Positions 11,380 to 13,359 of a stretch of 44,500 bases of DNA are shown here, one piece after another (position 1 is the stretch's first letter; each line of letters begins with the position of its first letter). The notes beneath the pieces are model-generated. The model searched no databases, had not been told where the DNA came from, and was given only the letters and a program-made list of their open reading frames with translations. Origin of the DNA: Bigelowiella natans CCMP2755 (Eukaryota > Protista > Cercozoa); the NCBI GenBank assembly GCA_000320545.1, contig ADNK01001589.1, positions 1 to 44,500 on the forward strand, read 5' to 3'. The translations under genes were made by a program, and so were the position numbers.

Positions 11380-13359
11380 TGCTTCGTCGAATCAAATCAT
11401 GAGTCGGTTTTGCACGTTGTCATGCGCAACGCTAGAACGCAGCAGCTGCGACATGCAATGCACTGCGCTGCCTGGTCACGCCAGCACGCTTCGCGGATTG
11501 CACTTGGACCACAAAAAGTGTTCTGATTGATGACATTCACGACAATGCCAGAACGTTGCTGGCATTTTGCTGTCAACCGACAACAGTCCCACGCTAGCAC
11601 GTGTGAGCATGATGATGTGCTCGATCCCGGCACGATCTAGCGATGTGTGCGGTGATTGACGCAGCTTGGACCAAACAAACAAACCACACTTGCTTCATGC
11701 TCTCGATCACAACGAGCCAGCGAGGTCATGAGGCTCGAGATCGATGAAGCGATTGGCGCACAATCTAGCAATTGTTGCTCGTGTTCTCGATCGAGCCACA
11801 ACAAACAACATTTTCCAGCTTTGCGTGCGAGCGACCGCCGCTAGCGCCGTGCAAGCACGATCGCCTCGATCGAGCCACACTTTGCGTGCGAGCTCTGCAC
11901 TGCTAGACTGCTGTCCACAACCAGTCTAGCAGTGTGTTGACGTGTTCCAGTGTTGGGACAGCTTGGACGCGTGCGAACAACGTCATCATTGAAGCACACT
12001 TTTGAACACCAACAGTCCAAACAGTGCGAATCTTTCTTTCGCATTTGAGTCAATTCAGCCTTTTGGCGCTCCACTAGTTCAGCTAGCCAGCCTTGCCCAG
12101 ATCCAAACGTGCAACTTCAAACTTGCTAGCTTGCTGTGGCCCTGAAAAGTTCGGACACAGTTGAGAACCAGCACGTGGCTTGGGCTTGGCTGGACTTGCA
12201 ACAGCTTGCTCGTGCGAAAGCTGGAAAGTCCACGTTCATTGTCATTGGTGATGTCACGATCGCGATGTGGGACCAAAATTGACGTGCCAGCGTGTTCCAG
12301 TCCAGCAGTGTTCACGAACGACAGCGCATGGCCGTGAAAACTGCAGCAATGTGGGATCCAGGGATTGACACTGCGCAACACTGCAGCATTGCTCATGGAT
12401 GCTGGGATGCTGGGATGTGCGAAATGGTTCGATGCCTGAGTTGAAAGGCACCATGCACGTCTCTTTCAACGTGCGAAGTGAAGTGCCTCGAACTGGCTTC
12501 AGTGAGGACTGACTAGCAAACTAGCGGGGTTCATGCAAATTGGCACAAACTGAACATTGAATGCATCACAAATGGCAGCCAAATGACGACGACGCAAAGC
12601 ATCCATCCTGAGCAGGAACTTTCTGACAGTCACGTCCACACGGAGATCAACGTTGGGGACAACCGAGGGGGCGCCGAGGAAGACACCAGTCTTGACAGAG
12701 TCAGGGGCATCAAAAAGTGAAGAGCAAGCAGGAGACACAGGGCTGAGAGTTGCTCTGATGCCGGAGAACAATTGAATTCTCACTGTCAGCACTCAAGTGA
12801 GCACAATGGTGGACGAGGTGGTCAACACTTTGCACAAACTGTGGCGCTCAGTGCAACTGGACAACACCGGCATCGCAAAGAGGGCAGATCGAGGATGAGG
12901 GGGTCAAATTGCAAATTTTGGCCCTGAGTTCTTTGGTTTCGCAAGTCCCAGCACGAAACTGAAGTTTCAGCAACACACCTGGGCAAACGTGCCACTCACC
13001 TGGATGGCGTTCAAACAGTCCCAGAGTCTGGAAGCTGGCCCACCAACATGCCAGCATGCTGGCATGGCTCTTGGCCCAAGCTCTTGATTTGGAGATGGGG
13101 GCATCGGGTTTGATGGACAGGCAAGAGCTGCGACGCAAGTTGCCATTGGTGGACAGTGGAGCCCTGACTCCACGGTTTGCAGGTTGAGGTCCAGAGTGTG
13201 ACAAGACATTTGCAGTGTGCGAAACGCCACGCTGGCACGTGATGGATCATGAAGCCAATGTGGCTAGCCGACACAAGAGGAGAGACAAAGGAAAATTCTG
13301 ATTTTTCCTCAGAAATCAAATCATTTGATGCATTTTTTTCCAATTGTCGCAAGAAGCGG
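11380..13359. other. TpA-erased repeat/TE block (all surviving TA within CTAG)
   Basis: Manual count: 13 TA dinucleotides in ~1980 bp, every one in CTAG; none at all between ~12525 and 13262. Confidence 0.92.

Follow-up and report, generated by a model that had tools for sequence, protein, structure and literature searches.

Fungal repeat-induced point mutation (RIP) alters both strands of repeats by transitions at a specific dinucleotide, proceeds to saturation and spreads into neighbouring single-copy DNA; the change is C>T (CpA>TpA), which raises A+T and creates stop codons, and the process, which is premeiotic and relies on the sensing of duplicated sequence, depends on a RID methyltransferase-like protein. 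AID/APOBEC enzymes deaminate cytosine, typically on one strand of a replication intermediate. At the RNA level, fungal A-to-I editing often hits UAG/UAA, according to one report (PMC11156358). The closest described system is that of Bigelowiella natans itself, where Mettrop et al. (bioRxiv 10.64898/2026.01.13.699255) found two viral inserts to have gained 231 de novo mutations, nearly all of them TpA>TpG/CpA and arising at ~1000 times the background rate, together with 124 TpA-poor, CpA+TpG-rich clusters genome-wide and an enrichment of RT/endonuclease domains among TpA-poor genes. The mutations arose in clonal lines, and one viral insert is single-copy; the authors drew the comparison with RIP, proposed ADAT2 as a candidate and named transposons as a potential target. 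Transposons of B. natans carry H3K9me3/H3K27me3 (10.1101/2025.03.17.643675).

The block at 11380-13359 of our window (the whole 44,500-nt stretch analysed, from contig ADNK01001589.1) is an instance of this already known TpA hypermutation system, with the same change (TpA>TpG/CpA) and the same TpA-poor, CpA/TpG-rich signature: its observed/expected ratios of 0.12 for TA and 1.61 for TG+CA lie beyond the cut-offs of the preprint (0.43 and 1.52). An earlier note, made from the letters alone, had proposed a candidate genome-defence system targeted to repeats. The headline system is not new, having been described in the 2026 preprint (bioRxiv 10.64898/2026.01.13.699255), and its target is not limited to repeats, the single-copy DNA beside the LINE of the block being equally affected. 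Very probably, the block is the saturated footprint of this hypermutation, in which the A of TpA on either strand becomes G at a pace slowed by certain flanking bases, through a putative adenine deaminase at silent chromatin.

Only 13 TA were counted over the ~1980 nt of the block versus 111 expected from base composition (minimum over 2000 shuffles, 86). All 13 were in CTAG and none lay between 12522 and 13265, while TG+CA reached 396 versus 246 expected. The counts of the earlier note (13 TA, all in CTAG and far below expectation; ~740 bp free of TA; abundant TG and CA) were thus reproduced. In the window's ordinary DNA, TA was mostly near normal and CTAG made up 2.9% of TA sites, a share at which 13 of 13 would occur with a chance of ~1e-20. 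The number of CTAG was itself barely enriched (13 versus 7.7 expected, P=0.05); therefore the CTAG of the block were retained, not gained. Contigs from three other sequencing runs showed zero differences over 11000-12510 and 13198-14100. Since three independent runs agreed exactly in the unique parts, the letters of the block are real and an assembly artefact, for which the earlier note had wanted raw reads inspected, is ruled out. The block was present in 14 DNA runs from 13 samples dated 2021/2025, which is what mutation-accumulation lines would lead one to expect. No new changes were seen in its unique parts in the three runs compared, where almost no targets are left.

The block consists of a dead LINE 3' fragment and 1.1 kb of single-copy DNA. 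The fragment of this LINE (a non-LTR retrotransposon), 5'-truncated and broken, lies on the minus strand at 12463-13187 and is 66-69% identical in DNA to the region downstream of the RT at four other loci (L049, L055, L058 and L060). Within it, a remnant of the ORF2 C-terminus (12562-13177, minus strand), bearing one frameshift and a stop, was 57-62% identical to the L060 ORF downstream of the RT (E=4e-54) and carried a CxxC...HxxxxC-type zinc-knuckle motif that was recognised by reading the sequence. Judged from sequence, the family of the block displays the class features of a LINE: i) RT in the relatives, where RVT_1 precedes the shared part; ii) a putative C-terminal zinc knuckle; iii) 5' truncation. 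The fragment thus places mobile DNA, a target class of the described process, inside the block. The 3' end of the element (12463-12570, minus strand) is high-copy, with a summed read depth exceeding that of unique DNA several hundred-fold, and a sequence match located a short second piece of the same 3' tip at 13190-13227 (minus strand). TA-poor islands, up to 1.8 kb long, were found in all 29 other loci carrying this 3' end that were retrieved from the genome. At two CTAG of the fragment (12513 and 12521), about half of the other family copies have CCAG or CTGG instead.

The remainder of the block (11380-12462; no strand applies to coordinates given without one) is single-copy, apparently non-coding DNA with 10 CTAG, and was as TA-free as the adjoining LINE. 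Across 11330-12450, the only match in the genome was the stretch itself, no coding origin was found (its one ORF was without a Pfam match) and terminal repeats of note were absent. The LINE remnant of the earlier note is real, but it is confined to 12463-13187. RNA reads were absent over 11416-12040 and almost absent from there to 12455, and the RNA-covered stretch on the left of the block ended near 11400. RNA reads no longer than 60 letters (run X21) covered the left graded edge (11000-11400) and the LINE 3' end (12456-12767), apparently on opposite strands; those over the LINE 3' end come from other copies.

The direction of change was read from a second LINE family, yielded by an RT search and consisting of intact TA-rich copies and decayed sisters. 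The intact copy L038 held 145 TA in 3.4 kb. Between it and its decayed sister L053 there were 56 differences, 53 of which were TA->TG/CA; only one other A>G/T>C change was found among 1648 other A/T bases (Fisher p=1e-44 for TpA transitions versus other A/T sites), along with one transversion. Both strands had been converted within this single copy (30 TG and 23 CA), and the coding outcome was 42 missense and 13 silent changes with no stop codon. In five older copies, 89-96% of TA had been converted. At 35-57% of shared sites the copies disagreed on TG or CA, which places most of the change after their divergence, separately in each. Thus the A in TpA became G, whichever strand it lay on, and did so for the most part independently from one genomic copy to the next; the outcome was missense changes, not stops. 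These polarised alignments, the comparison that the earlier note had called for, agree with its reading of TpA->TpG on either strand in repeats and with its prediction that TA->TG/CA would dominate. C>T creating TpA, the direction of RIP, was not the change found, which ran the opposite way.

For the family of the block, none of the 33 relatives examined was TA-rich, and its ancestral TA sites were inferred from polymorphism, since the sampled copies were all TA-poor. CA/TG was the pair at 9 of 20 double-difference columns of this family, whereas any other pair accounted for at most two. These observations bear on the possibility that the element is TA-poor by intrinsic composition or by selection against TA, or that the assembly is at fault. 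In its favour are the TA-poverty of every sampled copy in the block's family and an already TA-poor final 700 nt in the intact second family. Against it, intact copies of the second family carry abundant TA, which was lost at the aligned positions of their decayed sisters, the block's family is dimorphic for CA/TG, and independent runs confirm the letters. Intrinsic composition is ruled out by the TA-rich intact sisters together with the dimorphism, and the explanation as a whole is extremely improbable.

Long open frames were kept in three fully TA-erased LINE copies (L032, L058 and L060), because TAA and most TAG stops had been removed; such copies may be counted as genes by gene callers.

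A mild excess of A>G on the sense strand was seen in both LINE families (L051-L061 versus L038, and 12463-12840 of the window), at 202 versus 156 for the non-slowed sites of one of them. It could mean that transcription exposes the target strand, a weak indication as the copies are related. It is also what speaks for retroelement RNA having been edited, in ADAR-like fashion, before reverse transcription. That reading is excluded by the two-strand pattern (both TG and CA within the one copy L053) and by targets other than retroelements: integrated DNA viruses are affected, and so are telomere-derived repeats and single-copy DNA. Moreover, ADAR prefers UAG (PMC11334849), a context with the 3' G that slows the present change. 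We accordingly give RNA editing a negligible probability.

The survival of CTAG followed a hierarchy of flanking bases. In 32 kb of non-redundant TA-poor DNA, selected without favouring CTAG, this tetramer stood at host density while the nine other NTAN classes were down to 1-5%, which supplies, for those 32 kb, the NTAN comparison suggested in the earlier note. In the block's family, whose copies are related so that counts overstate independence, TA was kept at 42 of 88 CTAG site-copies (48%, a figure resting on only three ancestral CTAG sites), at 10 of 143 half-sites (5' C or 3' G only) and at 2 of 130 of the rest; non-CTAG TA were kept at 4% overall. The intact second family, the polarising reference, is without CTAG; in L053, 15 of 24 half-sites were kept versus 9 of 52 other TA (p=1.5e-4). 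The two strands of half-sites in the block's family were hit equally (67 versus 65), so 5' C and 3' G each slow the change. In these small samples, one such flank was shown to slow TA change ~3-4 fold. The loss-rate factor was ~0.27 per slow flank, which for multiplicative effects predicts ~0.07 at CTAG, where the directly obtained value was <=0.18, limited by saturation. CTAG, carrying the two slow flanks on each strand, would thus be lost ~6-14 times more slowly and be the last survivor. It is slowed, not immune: the suspicion of the earlier note that CTAG is disfavoured or protected stands as regards the slowing, but protection is not absolute. At 12572-12575, where most of the family has CTAG, this copy reads ATGG, the flanking C having been lost and the TA converted. 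Among the de novo mutations of the preprint, as far as its data were available, a G lay 3' of the edited A in 20 of 206 versus 53 of 242 in a background drawn from 3.5 kb of a 186-kb region (p=5e-4).

The same mutator could also have been kept off CTAG by a motif-specific mark, such as that of a CTAG methyltransferase, by a binding protein or by an unusual DNA shape of CTAG. Consistent with this are the full host density of CTAG where nine other classes collapse, the leaning of the survivors to GCTAGC (27 of 79 versus 13 of 95 in host DNA) and the occurrence of (CTAG)n runs in TA-poor loci. On the other hand, half-sites are slowed as well, on both strands, and a palindrome-specific methylase would not mark them; about half of the family copies have lost CTAG to conversion; and the product of two flank effects fits the CTAG rates. 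The flank effects therefore fit a flanking-base preference of the editor better than a CTAG-specific mark, which we regard as unlikely.

A further candidate, CTAG as a sink filled by C>T in CCAG/CTGG, was rejected: the LINE bodies of five decayed copies contained no newly arisen CTAG, though their intact sister offers 24 CCAG/CTGG. The surviving CTAG therefore look ancestral. CTAG was absent from the intact second family (L038 1-3423 and its sisters), where ~7 would be expected from composition. Tandem CTAG runs were located in TA-poor DNA at L027 (750-1650), L052 (1150-1520) and L055 (1150-1520).

The process acts on DNA domains and fades over a few hundred bases to ~1 kb. Along L053, none of 64 TA was changed in the first 1.2 kb and all 14 were changed at 2400-2700, and because conversion ran from 0 to 100% along one copy, the process fades along the DNA. 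On the left of the block (10980-11380) TA observed/expected was ~0.5-0.7 and on the right (13460-13860) mostly 0.4-0.5; this windowed ratio established on both sides the graded edges that the earlier note had described. Slow-flanked TA predominated among the survivors: TA with a 5' C or a 3' G were 9 of the 12 remaining in the graded left edge (11130-11379, where RNA reads were present), 7 of 9 in the graded right edge (13360-13600), and 9 of 11 at 1100-1400, within the graded edge of a TA-poor subtelomeric stretch (469-1400). Slow-flank TA made up 25 of 32 in the edges of block and subtelomere taken together, compared with a host share of 40% (p=1e-5); host DNA that is partly edited would be expected to show this. 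At 181-460, telomere-derived units of known ancestor had undergone the same TA->TG/CA process, CCCTAA having become CCCTGA in 15 units and CCCCAA in 6, with 5 intact. Thus single-copy DNA and telomere-derived repeats were both reached. The edited units adjoin an intact CCCTAA array and are followed by the TA-poor subtelomeric DNA and then its graded edge (181-1400). The gradients point to domain-level targeting, not recognition of foreign sequence.

As to mechanism, a DNA adenine deaminase would make inosine, to be read as G at replication; it would be recruited to silent chromatin at transposons, viral inserts and chromosome ends, and deamination of these domains would inactivate transposons and viral inserts. 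The PF00383 deaminase domain had 7 matches in the genome; their presence is to be anticipated anyway from tRNA editing and nucleotide metabolism and says nothing on activity. The strongest match (G000:C980:65331-65633) lies in one uninterrupted frame of 158 aa. We put forward, as a tentative extension, that a dedicated, heterochromatin-guided putative DNA adenine deaminase acts on all silent domains, whether transposons, viral inserts or subtelomeres, and spreads into host DNA; with a TA rule unlike that of ADAR or fungal ADAT, it may not be the canonical ADAT2 put forward by the preprint.

Pol eta makes A>G changes at TA and AA motifs. The A>G could accordingly stem from error-prone synthesis or repair, carried out in silent chromatin by an enzyme resembling Pol eta or Pol iota, instead of from deamination; this reading draws on the TA in the preference of Pol eta and on the deaminase of this alga being a candidate whose activity is inferred. 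The L053 spectrum is nearly pure (53 TpA transitions against one other A>G/T>C and one transversion), however, and the available part of the preprint's data places only 1 of 210 de novo changes of the NCLDV region in an ApA context, while synthesis by a polymerase should produce ApA changes and transversions in greater number. Given this purity, a polymerase is less likely than a deaminase, and we think it quite doubtful as the source.

Comparison of the deamination reading with other mutators sets the B. natans process apart. It shares with RIP the saturating, dinucleotide-specific transitions of mobile DNA on both strands, with spread; yet its A>G raises G+C, with 42 missense changes and no stops in L053, a viral insert present in one copy is among its targets, and it was active in clonal lines (bioRxiv 10.64898/2026.01.13.699255). 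It therefore resembles RIP in outcome but is not RIP. Many near-identical LINE copies were almost untouched, which argues against a duplication trigger, though timing could explain it, and the single-copy viral insert argues against homology sensing. With ADAR and fungal Tad2/Tad3 it has in common that A is read as G and that a 5' U/T is preferred, but those enzymes act on RNA, whereas here a heritable DNA change is slowed by a 3' G. Like AID/APOBEC it is a context-specific hypermutation that damages mobile DNA, but adenine is affected, on both strands and in integrated DNA.

Relative to the preprint, in which two viral inserts were measured, the present analysis contributes polarised LINE copies, a rate hierarchy of flanks, gradients and telomere-derived repeats. 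CTAG, flank, context and telomere analyses are absent from its main text. A general literature search on TpA depletion or A-to-G defence gave nothing relevant, and one on CTAG returned only the preprint of Mettrop et al. Thus, within the part of the preprint available, there appears to be no report of the flank hierarchy, of polarised evidence from transposons or of the changes in telomere-derived units. The decayed LINE copies give direct before-and-after evidence that transposons, left as a possibility by the preprint, are targets. The flank fingerprint (unflanked TA, half-sites and CTAG) must be reproduced in vitro by any candidate enzyme and puts the search for a natural editor of adenine in DNA on a testable footing. 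A natural enzyme editing adenine in chromosomal DNA would, if true, be of interest to the genome-defence and base-editing fields.

Several minor observations were also made. The NCLDV capsid gene occurs once in the genome, and the three mutation contexts compared from the preprint's list all fit its locus at a single offset (chance 0.035). In Table S2 of the preprint, 4 of 210 A/T>G/C changes of the NCLDV region lay outside TpA (three CAT and one AAT on the edited strand), while the text states that all were TpA; a minor CpA activity is possible. Within the window, a TA-free His-rich trinucleotide repeat at 33619-33871 is probably not a product of editing, and the block is adjoined by a 7.6-kb open frame (14122-21765) that encodes domains of a Cid1/TRF4-type poly(A) polymerase as well as long tracts of low complexity.
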